64,000 nucleotides of DNA, taken from Eutreptiella sp. 'Long Island Sound 2002' (lineage: Eukaryota; Protista; Euglenida). Position 1 is the first letter of the stretch. Each line of letters opens with the position of its first letter. The stretch spans positions 3,844,001-3,908,000 of the forward strand of contig OZ038378.1 of assembly GCA_964036045.1 (NCBI GenBank). Direction: 5' to 3'. The notes below the pieces were generated by a model. The model did no database searches. It saw only the letters and a program-made list of their open reading frames with translations, and was not told the origin of the DNA. Positions 2,133 to 61,634 of the stretch are shown here, piece by piece. Position numbers and translations under genes: made by a program.

Positions 2133-3570
2133 AGATCAATATGGCTACATCACCCATGCCTTCTCGGGGTCCCCATAGTGGGGAAAGATCAATATGGCTA
2201 CACCACCCCTGCCTTCTCGGGGTCCTCATAGTGGGGATAAATCAACCTAGAAAGGAATGGATGAGCAAAAAATGTGTGAAAAGGGGGTAAAAATCCAAAT
2301 ATACCACATCCCCAATGCGAAAGAAGCATCGAAATATCCGTTTCCAAACAACAATGTGTCCCCAACACGGGGACAAAAAATGCGGAAAATGGGGGGACTT
2401 AGGGAAATAAGGGGAAAGTTTGCCCAACACGCTAACGTACTCTCAAGGAGTGATGGGATCCAGCTCAGTGAGGCTCCAGCAAGCCCACACTTCCTCCAGG
2501 TCATCATGAGGGGGAGCCCACGCAACTATTTGGGCGCCTGGCCGTACTAGAGACCCATACTTTGAGATACTAGGGGCCCCTAGGGGCATCATGGTGACCC
2601 CTAGCGGAGGTTTTGACTTCTGATTTTGTCCCCCTTTGTTGGGGACCCCCGAGAATGCAGGGGTGGTAGACCTGAATGAAGTTCACGTGGAGTTGTTCGC
2701 GTGTAAGGAGCAGCATATGATGCAGCTCTACTGTCCGCGATACCTCAATAACGCCTATCGCTTCTACTGGAGATCGATGGGGTTGTGCTATGCTAACCCC
2801 CCATTCTCCCAACTTGCTAAGGTGTTGACCAAGATCGCCCTTAAAGGAGCGAGAGTGGTACTGTGTACCCCAATTTGCAACTTTCTTGAGCTGAGGCAAT
2901 TTGGGTCACCTAATGCTAAGGGCGTTTCCAAGGGGTGTGCTTGGGGGCTCTTCGGGGGGAACATAGTCTAAAAGTAGCGCGCAGTGCGCGTGCAGTGCGC
3001 GAGCAGTGCAAAGATTCCCCCTGAGCCTATTTGACATGGACATTCTGAGCTCGTCAAACCCAAGATGCCAAGCAGGCACTTCCATGTTGTGTTTCTTGGA
3101 AACGACCCCTACAAAGGATTCCCAGGCCAAGTTGTTGCACTGCGTGCGGAGTGCGTGGGCACTATGTGCGCGTTGTGTGCACCTGCCGGGAAACTCACCC
3201 AAGATCACCTACCACCTGTCTGCTAGCACAGCAAAGCAGCAAAGCCCACAAGATAACAACCAACACATGAGGTGGCACAATGGGGCCAAGGGCTAGACGA
3301 GGGGTAGCGAACCTGGCGCCAAATACAAAAGTGGGTGAGGTACAACAAGATGCGAATAGATTTGTGAAGGGGGGTCCCATTGCCCCCTCCAAATATTGCG
3401 ATAGCCTTCGTACGCACGGGATCTTAACAGTGATGTACACCACGGAAACGAGCGCTGGGTCCAACAGTATCGCAGCCCGACGACAAGTTTCGCGACCCTG
3501 AGAAGGCAAGGGTGATGTAGCCATTCCGCCCACATGTGGGCCCCCGAGACGGCAGGGGTTAAGTAGCCAA
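2133..3570 (+). mobile_element. Degenerate DIRS-like retroelement remnant with inverted terminal repeats
   Basis: A tandem pair of the ATGGCTACATCACCC..GCCTTCTCGGGG unit at 2133-2237 is mirrored by an inverted pair at 3495-3570. A methyltransferase-like fragment lies between them. Confidence 0.55.
2660..2872 (+). pseudogene. DIRS-type Dam-like N6-adenine methyltransferase domain fragment
   Basis: VELFA...YCPRYLNNAYRFYW...CYANPPFSQLAKVLTKI..GARVVLCTP follows the DIRS MT pattern, including an NPPF motif. It is interrupted after VVLCTP. Confidence 0.65.
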
Positions 3571-4867
3571 CTACTGAGTGACAAAGGAAGCTGAAGTACG
3601 GTGCTGTGCGCTTCTAGGGACAAGTGTTAAGGAAGTTGATGACCCAAGCACTGCCTCACGAGATGATTGTGATGAAGATGATGAAGATGTTTGTGCTTTG
3701 TGTTGTCACAAACGCACCACCACAGTTAGTGGGCAGTGCAATGAGAGGTATTGCGTTGAATGTATTGACCCTCACGCTTGTGGGGATGAAGTTGTGCATA
3801 TTGCACCATAATTTTGCACTGTTTCTTTACATCCGTGACCTTCCCATGTTACAATACACCCTATATTATTTCCTTGGAACACAATCCTAGGAGTCATTAC
3901 GGTTGTGGAATAACGATGCATGAAAGGTTCCTTGTTCACCTGCAGTTGTGCTTTGTGGTGTCATTCGTGCTTAGGGTTCTTGGGCTGCAGGAGGGAATAT
4001 CTAGTGGTAAAGCATTGGGATGGACAACCGGGACATTGATTTGGATGCCGGGCAAACGTACCCTCCTTCTCATCCGCTGGTCCCTACGCCAATTCCCCTT
4101 CTGTCTTTCTGTGGATTGTGGGTCACCAATTCTAGAAAACGATCTGGTTGTTGTCCAGTGTGGTGTGTGGGGGTTGGTTTCGCTAGGTTTACCCTCGGTC
4201 TACTTGACACAATGAGGCTCTATCAAAGGAAACAGAGACTTGCACTGCAGTGTGGCCCGCATTCTGCTGGTTGACCGGTGTCCACACCTGAGGTGGCGAA
4301 ATCCCCCCCCCCCCCCGAGATATGAACCAATGGACAGTTCGAACCCCGGGGAGGTAAACTGGGAAACGGGAGCGGGCGGTTGGGAAAACGGTTATATTGG
4401 TGACGGCCAAGCAGCAAACCGGAAATGCACTGCACACACACGCCACAGAACACGGGTTCGAGCCCAGGTCCCGGCCGGCCTGCCATGGAGCCGTTGCTTT
4501 TGTTATACTGTGATGCAAGCCCAACCGGCCCAATGGGGGGTGTAGGCTTGTAGGCTTTACCCAAACGGGCCCAGAAACATTCGATAGCCGCTGACTGCGG
4601 TGAGCTCAAGGCAACATTCGGCGCTCGTTTGAGTACTGCAAAGCAGCAGGTCAAACATTGAACTGAATTTTGTGGCGATGACCATATGCCTGTGACACGG
4701 GGGCATATGTGAGCTCTGTATCCGTTGCTTTATGGCCCTGTGCAAGCATGGGCTTGTCTACGCACAGTGCCCACGGTGCCCATGTTGTACAATGGAACTG
4801 ATTTGTCCTGCCGGTGGGATACCGGGGGTGACGGCTATCGTCGGATTATGGCTAAGCACGGTGCCCC

Positions 4868-5090
4868 TGTCTGACTGTTGCTTTTCTGGTTTTTTCTGAC
4901 CATGGTTTTTGTGGTCTGAAATGTACCGTGACCTGGTTGTGTTCTGATTATAGAGGTAAAGTGGGGCTGGGCCATGTTCCTGGTAGTTCTTCTTGCTCAG
5001 AACAACGTTCTGCTTGGCACTGCAACCCAAAGCTGTTTGTTGTGATGTGATTTTCAGCGATGGTCAATGTTGCTATCGCTGGCATGGCTC
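4868..5090 (-). mobile_element. Dispersed degenerate repeat (copy 2 of 1118-1345)
   Basis: Collinear similarity to 1118-1345; the minus strand reads ...RKATVRQG. Confidence 0.45.
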
Positions 5091-5379
5091 TATGGACCAA
5101 AGCAGGCCGTGGGATTTGGGGCCTTGGCCATGTGTTTGAGGGCAAGCTTTACTTCACCAAAGATATTGTTGATGTCAGTTTTGTACCAAAGAACAAGAAG
5201 CCCAAACCCATTCTAGAAACCTGCAGCCAAGGCTGCTCCAAAGCCTGCCCGAAAGGGCAAGCATGTCCCCCCCCCTTGAAATCCCCCGCTTGCAATCCCC
5301 TGCCCCCTGCTGATGGGGGAAACCATCACTTGGCCACTGATGCACCCTTCATGCCAATGCAATTCTCGTATCACTGCAC

Positions 5380-5670
5380 CCCTCCTGCCAATGCACCCCT
5401 CCTGCCAATGCACACCTCCTGCCAATGCACCCCTCCTGCCAATGCACACCTCCTGCCAATGCACCCCTCCTGCCAATGCACCCCTCCTGCCAATGCACAC
5501 CTCCTGCCAATGCACACCTCCTGCCAATGCACTCCTCCTGCCAATGCACACCTCCTGCCAATGCACACCTCCTGCCAATGCGCCCCTTCTGCCAATGCAC
5601 CCCTCCTGCCAATGCACCCCTCCTGCCAATGCACACCTCCTGCCAATGCACCCCTCCTGCCAATGCGCTT
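5380..5670. repeat. 17-bp minisatellite (CCCCTCCTGCCAATGCA variants)
   Basis: About 17 tandem units. It produces repetitive ORFs in all frames. Confidence 0.95.
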
Positions 5671-6104
5671 CTCATGCCAACGCCCTCACGCCAGTGCACC
5701 ACTCATGCCAATGCCCTCTTCGCAAATCCATCCAGTGCCTGTGATGCCAGTGGAACATGTGCAAAAGTTCAAAGTGGTGTGGTTTCATGATGCAAAAATT
5801 CCACACTGTACCACCATGCGTCGCGTGCAAGCACGGCGTTGTCTAAGCACAGGGAACACGTCTGACCGTAGTTTTCCTGATTTACAGCGTCCTTGCGCAA
5901 GGGAGGGGGCTTGATTGGAGTTGGAATTGGATTGTGACATAGTGTACCTACCCAGGGACATTCTTGTGGCTGTTGTGGCTATCATCTTGTACATGACATA
6001 CTGGTGACTGACTTGCGTGCTCATAAATACCCCACAATTCCAACTACCACTGCAATACCTGCAGGTCTGAAGTCTCGCCCAGCCAACTGCTCTGTGGCAG
6101 CAAA

Positions 6105-14300: not shown

Positions 14301-14744
14301 TCAACTCTCCTCAACCTGGTGTACTTCGGCCTAGCTGAGCAGAGGGTCAAGGAGCGACGAGCGCTCAACCCTGGCCAGCGGACTCTCCTTCCCGGCGATC
14401 GGGTCGGTGGGCGTGGGACGGCCATCAGGGCTACCAAGAACCAAGAACCATAACCCCCCCCCCCCCCGTTTCCCCTCGGCTTTCCTCCAGTTGCCAGGGT
14501 CAAAAGGATACACCGTTGGAAACAAGAAGATACCCCGTAATCGGATCTCACTGGTACCATCCTCCCCCTTGAAACACAAGCGCCAAACAATAAAGCCACG
14601 AACGCGATGATTTGACGGAATTCACGAAAAGTAAACTCCGAAGCCAAGACTCTGTGACATGCCGACTGGGGCCATGCGTTCCAGCTTTTTGATGTCCGCA
14701 TCAATGAAATGTGAGATGGACATCGTTTAGTTTAGTTTGACATA

Positions 14745-15789
14745 CAGGGGGGGAGAATTTCGTGGGGGGAATATTTCGTTGTGGGAAAATTTTGTATTTC
14801 AAATGTGTGCGGAATTTCCCGCTCAATTTTCAGGCCGCTGTGCGAAATAAACCCGGTGCGAAATTTAGCCACACGTGCGAAATTTAGCCACTGGGGATTC
14901 GCCGGATTCGCAGGAGGGATGCTTCTTGCCCCCCCCCCCCCCCCTCTTCCGTGGGCTTCTGGGTTTCACTCGCTGCTCATCCCCCCTCTCCCTGTCTCTC
15001 CCCTCCATGTAACCCAAAGCATTGCAGATCGTTGATGAATTAAAAAAGCGCCGTGCCCTGGGTGTGGTGCCTCAAAAACAGGCCAGTAAGAGGCCATTGG
15101 ATGCCTCTTCGTTTCTGGATTTGCGCAAGAAACGGCACAGAAAGGAGGCACGCAAGTAGTGGTATTTGGATCCTCTCTGTTTTCTTCAGTGCAACCTTTT
15201 TTTTCGAATTTGAAGTGATATTTTATCAATCTTGACTCGCAGCCTGAGTGTTATGACTTGCAAGGTTGGGAGGCTTTGTTTGTGCAGGAAAAAAGTATTT
15301 TCCCTTCAGGCTTCCCGCTGCAAGGCTGGTGCTCAAATTGTAGATAGTGGGAATTGAATCCAGGTTATTTTTTTGTAAGACCACTGCACATACCACTAGA
15401 GCACTCACCATCACTGACATACTGCTGCTCAAGAATCACATAGAGCCTAAGGGGTGAAAATTTTTTTCAAAAATTGAGAGAGGTTTTTGGTGTCCACATG
15501 TTTGTAGCTGCACAACAACCAGAAGGAAGGTGGTTGGGGCATGGGATTGAGATCCAGGTCATGCAGGAACCCCCTGAAAATGAAGAATGCCCAGCTGGAA
15601 GCTCTTGGAAATTCGCAAAACAATCCTGGAACCTGCTGGAATTTGGCAGTGCAACTACCACTAGCAAACAGTACAATCCTGGAAGGCTGCGAAATTTCCT
15701 GCGGGATTTTCAGGCCACTGTGCGAAATAAACTCGGTGCGAAATTTTCTCGTGCGAAAAAACCCCTGTGCCAAATTTTCTCCCCCCCTG
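14745..15789 (+). mobile_element. Non-autonomous deletion derivative related to the pogo-like element at 56473
   Basis: CAGGGGGGGAGAATTT...AAATTTTCTCCCCCCCTG ends, with TA on the left flank. It carries LQIVDELKKRRALGVVP (about 15020-15158), matching the transposase C-terminus LRILDHLKKRRALGVAP. Confidence 0.85.
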
Positions 15790-16446
15790 CAGTCTTTGGG
15801 TTGGGTTGAGGTTCTGGTACAGATGGGGACAAAACATAGGAGACCGCCTGTTGACATGCCAGACGCTACCCCCTCCCCCCCTCCCTGCATATGCATACCA
15901 GGACGTGCATGTGTAGAGCACTTTAAGACCTGCTTGCGCCCCCCCTCCCTGGACACCCCAGACTCCCACCCAGGTGGCGACCAGTTTTACAAGTTGACTG
16001 GGCACCCATGGCGCCAGAGCAAATTTCGACGAAATTTTTTACCCCAACATATATGCATCAAAAGGATGGCCCCAAACACATGCACCAGGAGCGCAGCAAA
16101 AGGGAACAGGAGATGTCTCCTCAACCCCAGCTCTTACCCAGAATCGGCTCAATCTGCAGAGGCACAGGCAGCTCCTGTAGCCTTCATACCTGATTCACCC
16201 ACTCCCCCCACCCACCCCCTGCCCCCGATCTCGGCCCCGAAAGTGTCCATCCTGGCTTCTTGATGAGCCATGCATTATTGCCGGCTGAAGGCTCGCCGGA
16301 AAAGTCGTGGCCAAGGACAACAGGTTTTCTTTTTTCTTTTGTCATTCTGTCACTTAAACTTATGGATGAATTCTTTGCTCTTTGTGTCTCATAGCTGGTT
16401 TCTCCTTGCGTTTGTAATAGACCAGCAAACCACAAACTGTCACCTA

Positions 16447-20700: not shown

Positions 20701-22014
20701 CGGCGGGCCGGGAATTTCATTTTCCCCCAAGGAAACAGTTTGTGACGGGAGTGGGGGCGTAGAGAAGGGGGGGCCGCCACCCACACAATGAGTTTGAATC
20801 CCGCCCCCTGTGACTGAGATGCGGGGGGTGGGGGAACCCTGATGGGCTGAACGGGGACAGTGGGTGACATGGCCAGTCAATTATTCTTGCCTCACAAATG
20901 GACGCCATAACCCTAGACCAGCAAATTAAGGCAGTGGTGTGCAGAGTCGGTGGGCTGCCTGAACCCTCCGCTTTTTGCTGTACAGTGGCTGAATTGCTGG
21001 ACTGCGACATGGAACCGAAGGCTTGGCCCTCAGGCCCTATCCCAGGGGTGTGGGACTAGTGCGGGACCCACTAATCCGGGCCAAGCAGTGAGTCTGCATT
21101 TCCAGAGAGCCAAAGTGCATCAACTGAGACCAAACCCAAATGCAGCCTCCGATTCGATGCTGGCGGCCGCGCCTGCTCCATCAGGAGCGCCTGCAGGCCT
21201 CAGCAGGAAAATTGCTTGGCCACAAGGGGGGGCGGGGCTCAGATTGGTCCGGTGCGTCGCCATGCACTTCGCTCTGGCCGCGCCTGCCGCTTGACGTTCC
21301 TTGGCACTAGAGGTTTCTCCACAAGCCAATGACCGGGGGTGTGTGATTCGGGGTTCTTTATCAAGGAGGCAAACCGGTTGATGGTGTCGGACAAGAACGA
21401 TGGAACAACGTGGCATTGCATGCGTGTTGTGAGCTGCTGTCCTGTGTGCATGAAGGGAACAGCAACAGCAAATGCTGGACTCCATCGCACCTCAACAAGA
21501 GCGTCGGCTAACCAGCAACTGCTGTCGGCGTGCAGTGAAGAACACCTGCACAGGGTATAGGAAAGTATAGACGTCTGCATGCGTGTGGAACGACTGGGCC
21601 TCGGACGGGAACGGTCTGGGAGTGCGTGTGAGAATGTGTGGTATTGGTGCCTGTGGGACTAGCGTGGGCTGGCGTGCGGCAGCAGCTGCTTCCCCACATT
21701 TGCCGCAGGGCTTTGCTGACGATGCCGCGGCCATGGCCGCCGACGCGAAGCTGGAAGTGGGCCGAGCCACCGCCGCGCGACAGGCCGCAGAGGTGGCCGC
21801 CACTGCCGCGGCCAAGGCCACGCAAGACGCAATTGCCGCGCACACGAAGGCTGCGGATGCCGCCGCGAAGGCCTTGGCGGCGGCCACGGCTGCATCCGAC
21901 GCCCAGCGGGCGGCCGCCGCACGGGCCTCGGAAACGCAAATCGCGGCCGGGAAGGCCGCGGCAGTGGCCGCCAACCCGCCCTCGGAGCCCAAGAAGGCGG
22001 AGCGCAAGGAGTAG
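17775..22014 (+). CDS. Ala/Lys/Glu-rich helical protein with a single N-terminal TM segment; exons 17775-18244, 20244-20586, 21709-22014 (372 aa)
   Basis: The GT-AG junctions are phase-compatible (ELR|YAAA, AKK|GFAD) and sum to 1119 nt ending in TAG. Hydrophobic AMALVGVVGMMAMVAWGV; AG acceptor at 17750-17751. Confidence 0.75.
18300..18800 (+). pseudogene. Possible LINE APE-endonuclease remnant inside intron 1
   Basis: Broken frames with GWASWSTASFHWHAGCVTNGLLVLV and WMLVGD, resembling APE motifs. Weak. Confidence 0.3.
21358..21611 (+). repeat. Left arm of a 254-bp inverted repeat
   Basis: Reverse complement of 23202-23455 with one mismatch. Confidence 0.97.
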
Positions 22015-23201: not shown

Positions 23202-23455
23202 TTCCCGTCCGAGGCCCAGTCGTTCCACACGCATGCAGACGTCTATACTTTCCTATACCCTGTGCAGGTGTTCTTCACTGCACGCCGACAGCAGTTGCTG
23301 GTTAGCCGACGCTCTTGTTGAGGTGCGATGGAGTCCAGCATTTGCTGTTGCTGTTCCCTTCATGCACACAGGACAGCAGCTCACAACACGCATGCAATGC
23401 CACGTTGTTCCATCGTTCTTGCCCGACACCATCAACCGGTTTGCCTCCTTGATAA
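23202..23455 (-). repeat. Right arm of the 254-bp inverted repeat
   Basis: 253/254 identical to the reverse complement of 21358-21611. Confidence 0.97.
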
Positions 23456-56400: not shown

Positions 56401-56694
56401 CGTGCAGAAAGCAGCAAGCTGCTCAATTTGCAGGTCAGTTAGGCAAGCCATCGGAGCAAGCAAAGATAGCTACAGGGGGGGGGGAAATTCTGTACGGGGA
56501 TTTTTCCGCAGGGGAAAATTCCGCATGGGGAAAATTCCGCACCTGTCCCAAAAAATCAGGGGAAAATTCCGCACCTCCCAAATCTTCAGTGCATTCGAAG
56601 CAAAAGGGATCCTGGGATTGCGATCCCCAAAAGACACACACTACACCAAAGCAACCATCAATGATTCTGCAGATGTCTGATTTGTCAAAGAGTA

Positions 56695-58830
56695 CTACGC
56701 ACGTGCTTTTCGCTTTGCCATAAAATCAGCTGGGACTGCTTTTGGGGCAACACCCAATGCACGGCGTTTTTTCAAATGATCAAGAATTCGCAAGCTGTGT
56801 CCTTCAAGGACGTTGGCGTCCTTCAAAGCCTTTGCAGTTATCAAGGAGAGTTCAGCCATGGAAGTAAATCCAGCTTCAGCCAATGGTCCAGCATACTGCT
56901 GGTACCCAAGGTTTTTCAGAAAAAGAACCACATTGGCATCTGGTGTCAGTTTTACAACAGGGCTGGCAACTTTTGACCTTTTCTTTGGCCTTTTGCTCCT
57001 CGATTTCTGGCGTGCATCATCTGTAGTCTCACTGCTGGTACTGCCACCACTACTACTGGTACTGCTGTCACTTGGACTGCTTTCAGAATCTGAATCAGAT
57101 GAGGCACATGCAGGTGCAGGTGCAGATGCAGATGCAGATGCAGATGCAGCTGCAGATGCAGATGCAGATGCACGTGCAGGTTCAGATGCAGATGCAGATG
57201 CAGACGCAGCTGAGGCACGTGCTCTCACAGCAGCTGAAACGGCAGGTTGCCGTGCCCTCTTGCGCTTCGTGGCGGGCTTCCATTTGTTTCGTTCCCGCTC
57301 TTCTGCAGCCTCAATTAAAGCAGTTAAATCCTCAGCAGGTGGAGCAGGTATTGGGTTGTCCACCAAGAGGGAAGGGGGGGCAGGAAGTCGAATAACTTCT
57401 GCAGGGGGCGGCACGTCATCTACAGAGGTGATCTCAGGCACAATGGTCAGTGCCTTCTCCCAGGAATTCAAAACCCAACCACGCATCTGTGGGTCTGTGA
57501 TCCATTCAGACAACCAAAGTGTAAGAAGCGGCTTAATCACCTCCTCACGCAGATCAAGAGGTGTGCCCTTCGCGAGTTTCCCCTCTGCGATTTTCATACA
57601 GTGCCTCAGGAGCCTCAACTTTGACCTCTGACGCACATGGGCACGACATGTGACGTTAATCAAATGATCACCTGAGTTAAGTACATGCGACCTATTGGGA
57701 AGGCCCAGGATTAAATATACTTGAGTGCCTGCTACTCGATAAATATGAAGCTCAAGCTTGACGAGAGCATTGCGGTCAATGTGACTAGGCACATTATCAA
57801 TGACAACAACAATGGGGGTGTCCATTGGTAAACCTGCGGCAGCAATCACCTCGCGGGCACGCTTCACAATCTGATCCACAAGCCTCAGAAAAGTGGCATG
57901 ATTTTGGGTTTTTTTTTTGGCATGATCATGATAAATAAGGGGGCTTACATGTGCCTTTAACGTGTCGCCAATCTTTGGATGGCACCGCTCAGTTGAACCT
58001 TTCCATAGTATTTGAAATAGGAAAAGCTCACCATGGGCGTTTGTAATGGGAGTTCCCGTGACTTGCCGTTTTTCCTTGCCATATGCAATGAAGACGTTCT
58101 GAACGCCCGTTGCTTCATACGTGCCACGCATCTCAGGGAAATAGTGCACAGGTGTCTCATCTGCAGCAAGCCGCAAGCATGTGGGGATGCTCTGCAAATT
58201 CTCTGGCATTGAGATGCCATGTTTCCTTGGGTTTTCGAAGACATCCTCCACCAAGCGGCGCCACTCGTTGTCTTTCAAGATATCAAGGACCGTCGACGGA
58301 CGCCGATCTGTGCTGCCGGCACGAAAAGACCAGCCTTTTCTGCGTTTGTAGTCTCTAGCGTAGGAGTCCCCAAACGTTGGTACCTCCTCAATATTCAAAT
58401 CAGCACGGTTTTTACGAATCACCTCATGTGCCATGACAACAATTCCCTCACGGTCTGCAACTCCACCTTCTTCCCGCACTTTGTTGAAAAACTGTTCCAG
58501 GGCAGCATCCTCATTTGGTGTTAACTTTGGTGGCCGCCCCACAGGTTTGATACACCCCTGAACAATCAGTTTCGTACCCCACTCTCTCATGGTGGACACA
58601 GGTGGACATTCATCAAACCCATATTTCACAATACAAGCCCGCTTGCCTCCACTTCGGTACAAACTGGCAGCCTCTTCTCGCTGCTTGTCATCCCATTTCT
58701 TCCATGGCTTCGAAGTGCCTGTAGGCGTCTTGCGTGTGCCCTTTTGGGCTGAGACAGCTTGCAAATGGTGCACCAAATCGCGCACAGCAGTGTTTTGGGT
58801 GTCGCTTTTGCGCACCACAAAGCGGTCCAT
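56695..58830 (-). CDS. pogo-like transposase (HTH + CENP-B-like HTH + DDE_1, DD42D) with a C-terminal SAM-like domain
   Basis: 711 aa; GRPPKL..., AADETP, VIDNVPSH and NSGD, then an Ala/Ser linker and FLKNLGYQQYAGPLAEAGFTSMAELSLITAKALKDANVLEGHSLRILDHL. An AG acceptor lies 9 nt upstream of the ATG. Confidence 0.9.
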   Translation of the reverse strand: MDRFVVRKSDTQNTAVRDLVHHLQAVSAQKGTRKTPTGTSKPWKKWDDKQREEAASLYRSGGKRACIVKYGFDECPPVSTMREWGTKLIVQGCIKPVGRPPKLTPNEDAALEQFFNKVREEGGVADREGIVVMAHEVIRKNRADLNIEEVPTFGDSYARDYKRRKGWSFRAGSTDRRPSTVLDILKDNEWRRLVEDVFENPRKHGISMPENLQSIPTCLRLAADETPVHYFPEMRGTYEATGVQNVFIAYGKEKRQVTGTPITNAHGELFLFQILWKGSTERCHPKIGDTLKAHVSPLIYHDHAKKKTQNHATFLRLVDQIVKRAREVIAAAGLPMDTPIVVVIDNVPSHIDRNALVKLELHIYRVAGTQVYLILGLPNRSHVLNSGDHLINVTCRAHVRQRSKLRLLRHCMKIAEGKLAKGTPLDLREEVIKPLLTLWLSEWITDPQMRGWVLNSWEKALTIVPEITSVDDVPPPAEVIRLPAPPSLLVDNPIPAPPAEDLTALIEAAEERERNKWKPATKRKRARQPAVSAAVRARASAASASASASEPARASASASAAASASASASAPAPACASSDSDSESSPSDSSTSSSGGSTSSETTDDARQKSRSKRPKKRSKVASPVVKLTPDANVVLFLKNLGYQQYAGPLAEAGFTSMAELSLITAKALKDANVLEGHSLRILDHLKKRRALGVAPKAVPADFMAKRKARA

Positions 58831-58940
58831 GATGTGTTCCTAAAAACATCATGGGGAACACAAACATATGGCACATGAGGAATCCGAAAAACCCTGCTGA
58901 GCTAACAACGACAATCCTTCAAATTTTGGTAGACAACGAG

Positions 58941-59329
58941 CGGCTTGGTGCTGATGAGACACCTGTGCACTATTTCCCTGGGATGCGTGACACCTGTGAA
59001 GCAACCTTGCAAAAAAAAAAAACACAGAAGCATGCCACTTTTCTGAGGCTTGTGTAGCAGGCACTCAAGTATATTTAATCGTGGGCCTTCCCAACAGGTC
59101 GCATGTGCCTAACGCAAGTGACCAATTTTGGTTGTCTAAATGGATCACAGATCACAGATCGTGGGAGAAGGCAATGACCATTGTACCTGAGATCACCTCT
59201 GTAGATGGCGTGGCCCGCCATTCACAAATTATTCGACTTCCTGCCCCCCCTTCCCTGTTTGTTGACAACACCTGCAGAAGAGCGGGAAAAAAACAGATGG
59301 GAGCGCGCGGCGAAGCACAAGGCATACGG
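58941..59329 (+). other. Inverted six-fragment condensed copy of the transposase coding sequence
   Basis: Six collinear blocks matching the reverse complement of parts of 57250-58173. Confidence 0.92.
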
Positions 59330-61634
59330 TGGTACGGTTGCTTACATGGACAAAATTCCGCACGGGGAAAATTCCGCACCTCCCCTTGAAAAATCAGGGG
59401 AAAATTCCGCACCAAATTGAAATACGGAATTTTCTCCGCGGAAAAATCCCCCCGCGGAATTTCCCCCCCCCCTGTACAATAGACCGCTTGAAGCATACGG
59501 GCACGTGGCAAGCAACAAATGACAAGGGCATAAGTGAGCAGAAACACAAGCAAACCTATTCTGAATTGGTCTTTTGCAATCATGTGGGTCTCCACTGGAC
59601 GTTCAATATTAATCAGCTTGCCCCAAGCCAATAGTGGAACATTGATGGAGTCTTGGGATGCGTGGGCATGCTCTTGTGTAGAAATTGTGTCATCGCTTTG
59701 TCGCGTTAGAACTTTTTGCGTCAACGACGTTTGTTCCTCACCCACCATTGGCAATCATCACAAACCTCACGTGAATGAAAGGAAGCAATTTTTGGCAAGT
59801 TGATGCACATCACACGTGCGAGCATGTGTAAGCAATCAAGGCGAGCAGAATTTGAGCCAACAAGGTTCCTTGTTCCTCCAAAGGTTCTGCATGCAATGCA
59901 AGGCAACGTGTATGCGGTGCTTATGAGAGATGATGAAGTGGCTCAAGTGGAGGCATGTTGCTGGTGTACAAGCTCGCCCATCTGCTGGGCTGTGCAAATC
60001 TCGTGATCAAGCATTCAACAATCTGGAGCTGGTGCATTTGACCACCTTGCGATCTGGAAATCACTGGGTCATCGGAGGCCTTTGCAAACTGATTCCAAGG
60101 GATCGCATACAGCACACGAGCTCAGCATCGTTTAGTGTCTTGCATCGTGTATGTCGTGCATCTTGCAGTGTGCAACGACATGCATCCATTAATGCTAAAT
60201 CCAAAAATGCAATACAACCATCCAATGCAGTACACTACCCCACCAACCCTTGGTACTTAAGTGGGGACAAGGCCTCCTTTGGGAGGAGGGGCCTAGGGGA
60301 CTTCATAGGCGCTTTGTCCCCCATTCCCCTAGCTAGAGGTGCTAGAGATTGTTCCTAGAAATGAAAAGTGTGGAATGAAAGGTGAAAGGGAAGACAAAGT
60401 TGTTGTTGTTGGTACAAGAAAGCATGGCAAAGCTTTTAAACTTGTGGCCCGCCTTTCACTTGCCCGATTTCCATGATTTTCGTATTTTTCGGGCCGCGAG
60501 CCGACATCGCGTGCCCATTGCAATCCCCCCAACACATAAAACAAGGGCACAGTGGAGTGTGGCAGTAAAACTTGCATTTCATCCTGTGTGACAAGGTAAT
60601 CTTTACACAACCAAGCATGCATCATACTTTGTATCGCTGGGGATCCGTTAGCACCGGGACAGTCCCACATATTATGCCGCGTGTGTTTTCAACTTTCTGT
60701 CACCTGGGCATGTCGGAGTTGGGCACTTCCTTTTACAAATTCAAAATGTACCCAGCAGCTGGGAAAGTGACCCGTAAGTGTTGTGTGCCTCGCTACGTAT
60801 GAAAGTCACGAGGATGGCATGGGTGCAGTGGTTGTGGGGCAATGAGTCGTGGCAAGGTTGCATGGTGCCTGAATCGCCAAAGGCCCATGCTTACATAGCA
60901 GGCAAGAAGCACGGAGCAACATGGAGTTGGCCTCTTTGGTGACATAGGATGGCACATTTGCATAACGAGGCTCAATGTGCTGCGTTTCACCGTTGCCAAA
61001 TTACCGATACCATACGAAGTCACAGTATTTTTTTTTTTGTGTCCTCAAAGAGGGTGGTGCTTGGTGCTGGGCGTTATGGAGACGTCAACATCGCGTCGGA
61101 TAATAATAACGGGGGAAACCCGCAGCAACCGCTGACCACCGTCGGTAAACCACCAACAGACTGTCAACTGCCATTGGCTGAGTAACGTTGTCCATCGCCA
61201 GAAAAAGATCACCGGGAGAAAATAAACGAACCCCTTCTCAACAGCAGCTCCAACAGCAGCTGGGCGACGCAGTGCATTTTAATGGCGCAACCCAGCCCCC
61301 TGACCCACGCTGCAGCTTGACAAGTAGCTGTACCCCCGCACTGCACGGCAACCCGTGCACTGCTATGCCTAAAAGCCCGGTTTCTGGATTGCCAGTGCAA
61401 TTCGTTGGGACGAATAGCGGCAATTGTGGGTTTGCCACCGCGGTTTACTCTACACAGCACCAACAACGCATACCGTCGAGAAAACAAGCCTGCTGCACGA
61501 CGTGCTTGACTGGTCGCATCGGTCGCACTGCGAGTAACCCAGATCTATGGGCCATGTCTTGTTGACTGGTCGAATCACACCTGATTGACCCTTCCCTTCA
61601 ATTGCACTCACCACGGATTCGTTTCTTTACAGTA

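Follow-up and report, generated by a model that had tools for sequence, protein, structure and literature searches.

Elements of the Tc1/mariner superfamily can give double-stranded RNA by intramolecular pairing of inverted sequences in read-through transcripts, as is known for Tc1 of C. elegans, and small RNAs derived from MITEs or hairpins are known as well. Inverted copies of transposon sequence are also found at loci that silence or stabilize an element. The maize locus Mu killer is described as a naturally occurring partial inverted duplication of MuDR (mudrA) that adjoins a TIR, and a long hairpin RNA complementary to the transposase mRNA is expected from it (Front Plant Sci 2012, PMC3440606). 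Ac killer 1, also from maize, is described as an inverted-repeat allele that arose by alternative transposition (bioRxiv 10.1101/2020.01.07.897926; PMC13635294); this transposon-derived inverted repeat, a product of aberrant transposition or repair, yields small RNAs homologous to the element. For Tam3 of Antirrhinum, one report describes Old Stabiliser, a copy with a rearranged 5'-terminal region, and New Stabiliser, a head-to-head pair that gives a hairpin transcript; at both loci the element's 5' end is the source of small RNAs (bioRxiv 10.1101/2024.06.24.600476). Here we describe an inverted copy of coding sequence that resides inside an intact transposon of the euglenid Eutreptiella, in a genome of 2.28 Gb. 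The window, that is, the whole stretch of DNA that was analyzed, is 64,000 nt long, and within it one transposon carries eight inverted pieces of its own transposase gene, together called the digest, between its 5' subterminal repeats and its transposase ATG.

The element and its antisense digest

The element is an intact, recently active, TA-duplicating pogo-like DNA transposon. Recognized by its TIR pair and TA-flanked termini, the complete minus-strand unit measures 3,006 bp including one TA per end (56471-59476) and runs from TA and CAGGGGGGGG at one terminus to CCCCCCCCCCTG and TA at the other. The TIRs are 47 to 56 nt long and 85 to 88% complementary, and they may be drawn either at 56471-56517 and 59430-59476 or at 56471-56526 and 59422-59476. 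The same limits, TA-CAGGGG...CCCCTG-TA, bound the window copy and all 17 of the 17 other copies examined, the flanks of which are otherwise unrelated. Each end also contains a subterminal repeat, block A, which at the 3' end has GGGGAAAATTCCGCAC-type motifs and was picked up as direct repeat families D2 and D3. The 3' copy (56515-56575, plus strand) and the 5' copy (59352-59413, plus strand) are 90% identical over 62 nt on the same strand, and block A (about 60 nt) is directly oriented at both ends here and in other families. The end that adjoins the digest had been taken for the normal 5' end of the element in an earlier note on this DNA, and indeed, a related 1-kb element (14743-15798) has a left end, 14743-14866, that can be aligned to TIR and block A (59353-59476) at 74.6% identity over 126 nt. 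The 5'-end arrangement of the two elements is the same.

The transposase is encoded by an intact ORF of 711 aa (56695-58830, minus strand), as established from the ORF listing and from an alignment with the relatives P0002 and P0003, in which the motifs DETP and IDNV(P/S)SH are invariant. At its C terminus is a SAM domain (aa 633-688; 56767-56934, minus strand; Pfam SAM_1, E = 1.1e-7, 32.6 bits against a cut-off of 23), and homologous C termini were found by tblastn in the related lineages L068, L073, and L076. SAM was the only match in a Pfam scan of the window's transposase, in which no transposase domain appeared at E <= 0.1 and HTH_Tnp_Tc5 was not detected. A profile built from the window protein and its two homologues retrieved 748 relatives. 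Among the distant relatives reached with this family profile, P0149 (E = 8e-16) and P0110 (E = 4e-19) match Pfam models above the curated cut-offs, DDE_1 in both and HTH_Tnp_Tc5 in P0110 only; a sequence search of PDB chains with the profile gave chance-level matches only. The TA duplication and the DDE_1 and HTH_Tnp_Tc5 matches of these distant relatives are the grounds on which we class the element, from sequence, as a divergent pogo-like member of the Tc1/mariner superfamily. It resembles the pogo/Tigger group in its TA target duplications, its TIRs, and its one transposase ORF. It differs from that group in that its protein combines the lack of a Pfam transposase match with a C-terminal SAM domain and in that its ends have long, directly oriented subterminal repeats.

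The digest is 455 nt long (58867-59321) and consists of eight collinear inverted blocks that are about 87% identical to the ORF span 58435-57259 (57259-58435, minus strand). The blocks have the ORF sense on the plus strand and are antisense within the element's own minus-strand transcript. The digest starts 37 nt from the ATG and is ordered such that proximal ORF sequence adjoins the ATG and distal ORF sequence adjoins block A; its pieces abut or overlap by 1 to 7 nt and span ORF residues 132 to 524. Nearest the ATG, block 0 (58867-58900) copies 58435-58400 (aa 132-144; 85.7% over 35 nt), and block 1 (58909-58944) copies 58295-58260 (aa 179-191; 28 of 36 positions identical). Block 2 (58940-59005) derives from 58174-58109 (aa 219-241, with DETP inside; 60 of 66, perfect run of 28 nt), block 3 (59013-59060) from 57918-57871 (aa 305-320; 43 of 48, perfect run of 24 nt), and block 4 (59054-59127) from 57735-57662 (aa 366-390; 66 of 74, perfect run of 27 nt). 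Block 5 (59125-59158) corresponds to 57520-57486 (aa 437-449) with a core in which 24 of 25 positions agree, block 6 (59159-59271) to 57465-57353 (aa 456-493; 98 of 113, perfect runs of 22 and 28 nt), and block 7 (59272-59321) to 57308-57259 (aa 508-524; 42 of 50). All eight lie on the plus strand. The seven skipped ORF segments measure 104, 85, 190, 135, 141, 20, and 44 nt. BLAST E values of single blocks range from 1e-10 to 1e-32, with a weaker value of 2e-4 for block 0, which pairs with its own source in the minimum free energy (MFE) fold discussed below. The same leader-versus-ORF BLAST settings applied to four relatives (L076, L070, L071, and L078) gave zero matches. The earlier note had reported six inverted blocks that follow the order of the ORF in opposite orientation. 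BLAST recovered all six at essentially the same coordinates, bore out the collinear inverted series with its skipped stretches of 20 to 190 nt, and extended it by two further blocks on the proximal side. The digest also lies inside the element, as that note had held, with no inner TIR and with a 5'-type end and directly oriented block A outside it.

The digest is a fixed feature of its family, with the same breakpoints from copy to copy. The whole digest with identical junctions is present in eight copies on seven chromosomes at a mean column identity of 97%, and a search with the digest only gave 179 candidate loci, 40 of which were scored and 40 of 40 matched, such that at least 40 loci carry parts of it. 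Later loci of the same organism were taken from the ENA assembly by exact-protein look-ups; such a look-up with the window's transposase gave a genome assembly contig as its sole match. Most digest-bearing copies are deletion derivatives with differing breakpoints, and many break inside the digest, in a sampling biased towards such copies. One of these derivatives, a 485-bp MITE composed of element positions 1-164 and 2686-3006, is found in at least 25 near-identical copies and keeps blocks 6 and 7, or 163 nt antisense to the transposase. The digest is inherited by every derivative of the subfamily.

Digests in related lineages

Whether the digest was a singular event can be judged from its relatives. 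A word search of 5.8 billion proteins returned three homologues only, two of which are distant (47-48% identical to the window protein), and the loci of both distant homologues carry digests of their own. At the first (L068, family 3), the leader 2570-2730 contains five collinear inverted blocks of its own ORF that are 81-95% identical, and two more blocks match the frameshifted C-terminal region; the true ATG is at about 2807, and the digest ends just upstream of the start. At the second (L069, family 2), the leader 7-269 holds six blocks 78-97% identical to its own ORF. This locus is a 1,587-bp JGI contig that is 100% identical to a deletion copy in the present genome. The digest lies at the 5' end of that contig, where no spliced leader is recognizable. 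A sublineage of family 2 (L073, 89% amino acid identity to L069) likewise has five or six collinear inverted blocks of its own ORF immediately upstream of the ATG. The two family 2 leaders are identical over the proximal 120 nt or so and then contain different, interleaved ORF pieces, and between families the positions of the digest blocks on the protein alignment differ.

The digests of families 2 and 3 each match their own ORF at 78-97%, and the proteins are now only about 47% identical; thus, the digests of the families are not passively inherited from a common ancestor. Instead, they appear to have been gained separately, at least twice, or to have been renewed. Renewal is suggested by the heterogeneous block identities of L069, which reach 97% over 103 nt and fall to 78% over 45 nt. 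Moreover, analogous own-ORF digests in two further families make a pure one-off accident unlikely. Altogether, digests occur in five of the six lineages of the present genome in which both leader and ORF are readable, and in those five they are always antisense and always directly upstream of a candidate splice acceptor and the ATG.

Lineages that have no digest also exist. In a maximum-likelihood tree, for which tblastn segments of broken copies were joined by X, the window's family (family 1) groups with L076 (support 88/92), and families 2 and 3 form a separate clade (99/99). This sister lineage, L076, comes from the same genome and is full length, and it is without a digest. The leader-versus-ORF BLAST found no digest in L070, L071, and L078, relatives from other samples, and L078 shares the TACAGGGGGG terminus and the MDKFV start yet lacks one. 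An older sublineage retains little of the digest. In the decayed near-full-length copy that represents it (L031, 88-90% identical), the insertion boundaries are those of the window copy (58881/58882 and 59325/59326), and the stretch that they enclose is only about 100 nt long. Its digest is two inverted blocks of its own ORF, 87 nt in all, with limits different from those in the window; the block sources correspond to 58189-58150 and 57954-57903 and overlap window blocks 2 and 3 only partly.

RNA folding, possible roles, and origin

What becomes of the digest in RNA may depend on trans-splicing. Spliced-leader trans-splicing is an established part of euglenid biology, and on that account a pyrimidine-rich tract in front of the transposase start (58840-58862, minus strand) is a candidate trans-splice acceptor; its terminal AG (58841-58840) precedes the ATG by 9 nt. 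A pyrimidine-AG arrangement 5 to 12 nt before the ATG is found in the window element, in L069/L073, and in L068, as well as in the digest-free L076 and L078. This suggests that the leader would be an outron and that the digest would be discarded with the leader before the mRNA is used. An AG acceptor had been proposed at this site; the pyrimidine-AG site is confirmed and recurs in sister families, and its use as an acceptor is deduced from euglenid biology.

Before such processing, the digest would be expected to pair with the ORF. A hypothetical precursor from 59420 to 57200 had an MFE of -1078 kcal/mol, compared with -747 +/- 6 when the digest was dinucleotide shuffled and -745 when it was flipped, a gain of about -330 kcal/mol. 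In the native MFE fold, 407 of the 455 digest nucleotides are paired with the ORF blocks from which they derive, the skipped parts of the ORF form loops, and the perfectly paired digest/ORF runs are 28, 24, 27, 22, and 28 nt long. The earlier note had suggested that a transcript from the 5' end could fold into long double-stranded RNA, and the in silico fold that it called for does give a long interrupted duplex with the ORF. Transcripts of digest-bearing lineages should therefore, as modeled, fold into long double-stranded RNA. Hairpin-RNA (endo-siRNA) precursors are expected to have paired runs of at least 21 nt, and the five runs here are 22 to 28 nt. Moreover, the same genome encodes Piwi domains at at least three loci and one RNase III-domain protein. 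With the predicted duplex, its perfect runs of 22 to 28 nt, and the Piwi and RNase III genes, the structural prerequisites for an RNA interference (RNAi) trigger are in place.

How the digest might restrain the transposase can be outlined. A transcript entering from the 5' end would contain the antisense blocks first and the sense ORF second and could form an interrupted duplex of roughly 400 bp with five perfect stretches of 22 to 28 bp. It counts against this outline that, with fast trans-splicing, digest and ORF may never come together in cis. The outron released at the AG before the ATG could also pair in trans with mature transposase mRNA, and read-through transcripts of digest-bearing MITEs could do the same. 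The duplex should feed RNA interference by the encoded Argonaute/Piwi and RNase III proteins, and transposase output would be dampened family-wide. The digest would then be a leaky brake by which the element limits itself, and no off switch. A repair-born, eroded antisense digest that acts as a leaky RNAi brake on the transposase is the best explanation that we can offer, and we hold it tentatively, at a little under an even chance.

Strong silencing is difficult to reconcile with the history of the family. Divergence between digest and ORF is about 12%, and the ORFs of all sublineages lie at roughly the same distance from the digest, whereas the dozens of digest-bearing copies differ from one another by 1-7%. 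Thus, the family transposed long after it gained the digest, which argues against strong silencing. At most it leaves a brake, and it does not fit a kill switch such as Mu killer. Two further observations count against a silencing role, namely, that the digest of the older sublineage L031 is so reduced and that the sister lineage L076 does without. The proposal of a built-in silencing module is partly supported: structure, fixation, and folding hold, and any silencing predicted from them cannot be strong.

A neutral repair scar, in which fold-back or template-switch patchworks are left behind without regulatory effect, is quite conceivable and almost as likely as a regulatory role. With the same reserve, such a scar could persist since the 5' leader is dispensable, being removed by trans-splicing, while equivalents in the 3' untranslated region or the ORF would be purged. 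Consistent with a neutral scar, digests erode by deletion and point change, the family was active after acquiring its digest, and the digest-free L076 is a full-length lineage. At sites where sublineage ORFs differ, the digest matched the window ORF or another ORF in 19 versus 10, 9 versus 9, and 10 versus 6 cases; window-ORF matches were thus not above expectation, their excess being attributable to private decay of the pseudogene copies. Ongoing gene conversion from ORF to digest thus finds no support, the window ORF being matched only marginally more often. Block placement was not enriched for conserved residues in family 1 (P = 0.15) or family 2 (P = 0.78), family 3 having been left out because a frameshift separates its called start from the true ATG. 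These values likewise give no support to selection for antisense against conserved motifs of the protein.

Rearrangement, moreover, is common in this family, which also favors a scar. The 3' region of L073 (5940-6318) contains a patchwork of five ORF pieces in direct orientation, which makes patchwork duplications near the ends a general property of the family, and among the numerous rearranged copies is one with an internal inversion (L032). The family is prone to such repair accidents. Against a neutral scar, however, stands the prevalence of the digest in five of six readable lineages, all antisense and all immediately before the ATG. Several independent gains or renewals are implied by the match of each digest to the ORF of its own element, and the unequal identities within L069 suggest renewal as well. 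Furthermore, family 1 kept 455 nt through about 10% divergence of its master lineage. The recurrence in five of six lineages, the constant antisense orientation and position, and the heterogeneous ages of the L069 blocks slightly favor function.

The antisense leader digest might even be a selected, repeatedly evolved self-limiting module, an RNAi trigger placed inside an outron, a proposal that we consider possible but on the whole doubtful. Trans-splicing would then physically separate the trigger from the message, transposase output would be set by a race between trans-splicing and duplex formation, and the outrons together with the digest-bearing MITEs would serve as trans-repressors across the family. 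If such a module exists, it would be a eukaryotic, cis-encoded counterpart of the antisense regulation of transposase in bacteria, and it would have evolved in a host, presumably clonal, in which the fitness of the element is tied to its own.

The hairpin might instead act in cis without RNAi, by a block to translation or export or by an effect at the level of DNA, and this we regard as improbable. In RNA form, un-trans-spliced transcripts or read-through transcripts of host genes would be blocked and only trans-spliced mRNA would yield transposase. In DNA form, the inverted repeats would influence synapsis, gap repair, or the formation of deletion derivatives. The duplex would indeed sequester about 400 nt of the ORF in the unprocessed transcript, the acceptor AG lies between digest and ATG in all three families, and, with the sampling bias given above, many deletion derivatives break inside the digest. 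Nothing in the sequence calls for a role of this kind, however, and neither their ends nor the context of their acceptor sets the digest-free L070, L076, and L078 apart.

The origin of the digest, whether as a brake or as a scar, was probably an inverted repair duplication that was then eroded by deletions. Origin from spliced RNA, as in a processed retrocopy, was rejected because the skipped segments are without GT..AG borders, which were absent from seven of the seven. Short microhomologies occur at several block junctions. Moreover, the different pieces within the same boundaries in L031 are what would be expected from independent deletions of one longer ancestral inverted copy. We propose that a break or stalled repair synthesis occurred at the junction of block A and the leader and that fold-back or template-switch synthesis, with the coding strand of the element itself as template, repaired it, which would have produced a longer inverted duplication. 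Such synthesis would yield the observed order of block A, distal ORF, proximal ORF, leader, and ATG. Microhomology-mediated deletions and point changes would then have eroded the inverted copy, differently in each sublineage, and across the families the duplication would have occurred at least twice or been renewed.

The digest could alternatively be composite or nested, an internally deleted copy inserted inversely beside, or head to head with, a full-length copy, the inner ends having since been lost. The family is rich in copies that carry several collinear internal deletions, and head-to-head pairs are known silencer loci, as the Tam3 work describes for New Stabiliser (bioRxiv 10.1101/2024.06.24.600476). 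Even so, a composite is very unlikely. No TIR-like sequence flanks the digest, and the outer end is 5'-type with block A direct, whereas an inverted second element would give a mirrored 3'-type end; the same boundaries, moreover, recur in the L031 sublineage. A two-element composite or nested inverted derivative was rejected for want of inner TIRs and for the 5'-type adjoining end. Finally, the chance that an assembly chimera or fortuitous similarity explains the digest is negligible, as 8,136 bp around the transposase gene are 100% identical in a contig of a second assembly record (ENA ERZ25074135), identical junctions recur at many loci (the eight complete copies and the at least 40 loci above), and block E values reach those already given while the control leaders had no match, so the digest is neither unique to one copy nor chimeric, two of the outcomes that the earlier note had named as refuting its reading.

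Comparison with known systems

The digest would matter whether it acts or not. Should it work as an RNAi trigger, a eukaryotic DNA transposon would offer a rare example of copy-number control that is built in, and there would be a handle on how spliced-leader trans-splicing in euglenids relates to RNA interference. An inert digest would be a recurrent signature of fold-back or template-switch repair at one specific site of an element and would indicate that trans-spliced leaders can shelter strongly structured junk. A full-text literature search, the coverage of which was incomplete and which is not proof of absence, found no description of a cis-linked self-antisense digest inside an intact element.

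Mu killer was the analogy first offered for this locus, and it holds as far as the inverted duplication of a transposase gene is concerned. It fails in that there is no separate locus and no kill switch here, transposition having gone on. Mu killer is described as a separate, rearranged, non-autonomous locus that depends on flanking-gene transcription and silences MuDR heritably in trans (PMC3440606). The present inverted copy, in contrast, lies in cis, inside an intact autonomous element and all of its descendants, and it differs further in being eight short blocks at about 87% identity, in being found in three families, and in having been compatible with continued transposition. Ac killer 1 is reported as one rearrangement of a chromosome that lies outside a functional element and is neither a heritable part of a mobile unit nor multi-fragment (PMC13635294). 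The small RNAs of the Stabilisers are reported to come from the transposase-binding region at the terminus and to leave transposase production unreduced (bioRxiv 10.1101/2024.06.24.600476), whereas the inverted material here is coding sequence and is situated, in an intact copy, between terminal repeats and ATG. The duplex of Tc1 read-through transcripts is formed by the TIRs themselves, and the one predicted here is formed by an internal antisense copy of the ORF.

Thus, Mu killer, Ac killer 1, and the Stabiliser loci are all separate, non-mobile or rearranged, and trans-acting, and the present digest does not share that feature. Its inverted copy belongs to the mobile unit, an active autonomous element and its MITEs having carried it to dozens of loci, and structures of an equivalent kind arose in two or more clades of this transposon group.

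Transposase tail and element ends

The SAM-like C-terminal tail of the pogo-like transposase is kept in four lineages of the genome, the overall identity of which is only 43-48%. The tail is encoded at window 56767-56934 in the element, at L068:4715-4951 in family 3, at L073:5469-5693 in family 2, and at L076:5432-5545 in a digest-free lineage, and it is missing in P0004, a relative from another organism. We note that the Ala-Ser run of the transposase is encoded by an array of GATGCA-type hexamers (window 57089-57236) that differs in length among copies.

How the ends of the element are organized is also shared. In several families, a subterminal repeat block is found at both ends in direct, not inverted, orientation, and such pairs lie at window 56515-56575 and 59352-59413, at L068:2207-2250 and 5865-5908, and at L075:3194-3242 and 4384-4432. 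Because the block is in direct orientation, the 5' end holds a small palindrome in which the block faces the terminal inverted repeat (TIR). The palindrome could be a pseudo-end or a fragile site.

A MITE and other rearranged copies

A MITE of 482-483 bp is derived from the element, with at least 25 copies in genome G000 (e.g., L055-L066) that are 96-97% identical. Its structure is the equivalent of window 56471-56634 fused to 59156-59476, and its interior is made of blocks 6-7 of the digest, 163 nt that are antisense to the transposase and match the ORF at approximately 90% identity. If transcribed by read-through, the MITE copies could be a source of antisense RNA in trans.

Other copies are rearranged. 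In a relative of 75% identity (L032/L028, G000:C13:17673000-17678000), the 3' half of the ORF is flipped in place, the inverted part being equivalent to window 56811-57771 with a breakpoint at 57771/57775. The remainder of the copy is collinear, and the rearrangement is an internal inversion. Locus L034 (G000:C20:23565500-23575499) carries two deletion derivatives, 98-99% identical and in opposite orientation with approximately 4.8 kb between them; both lack 58034-58781, and the left derivative ends within the digest at 59068. The pair resembles an inverted segmental duplication of local extent. Finally, a related family is represented at window 14743-15798 by a deletion derivative of 1 kb, in opposite orientation and 70-75% identical at both ends, in which approximately 80 nt of the SAM-coding region is kept and the digest is absent.

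Other repeats in the window

A perfect 254-nt inverted repeat (21358-21611 and 23202-23455, 100% complementary, 1,590 bp between) sits in a GC-rich (62%) stretch and probably forms the long TIRs of another element. Moreover, a 17-bp unit is tandemly arrayed in approximately 28 copies at 5272-5747.

A sense-orientation patchwork

L073, a full-length family 2 copy, carries a patchwork 3' of its stop codon (L073:5940-6318), in which five segments from its own ORF and 3' UTR (sources 4335-4382, 4418-4473, 4991-5026, 5596-5659, and 5670-5744) are repeated in direct orientation at 72-94% identity. The patchwork is like the leader digest in kind but differs in its sense orientation and in lying at the opposite end of the element.
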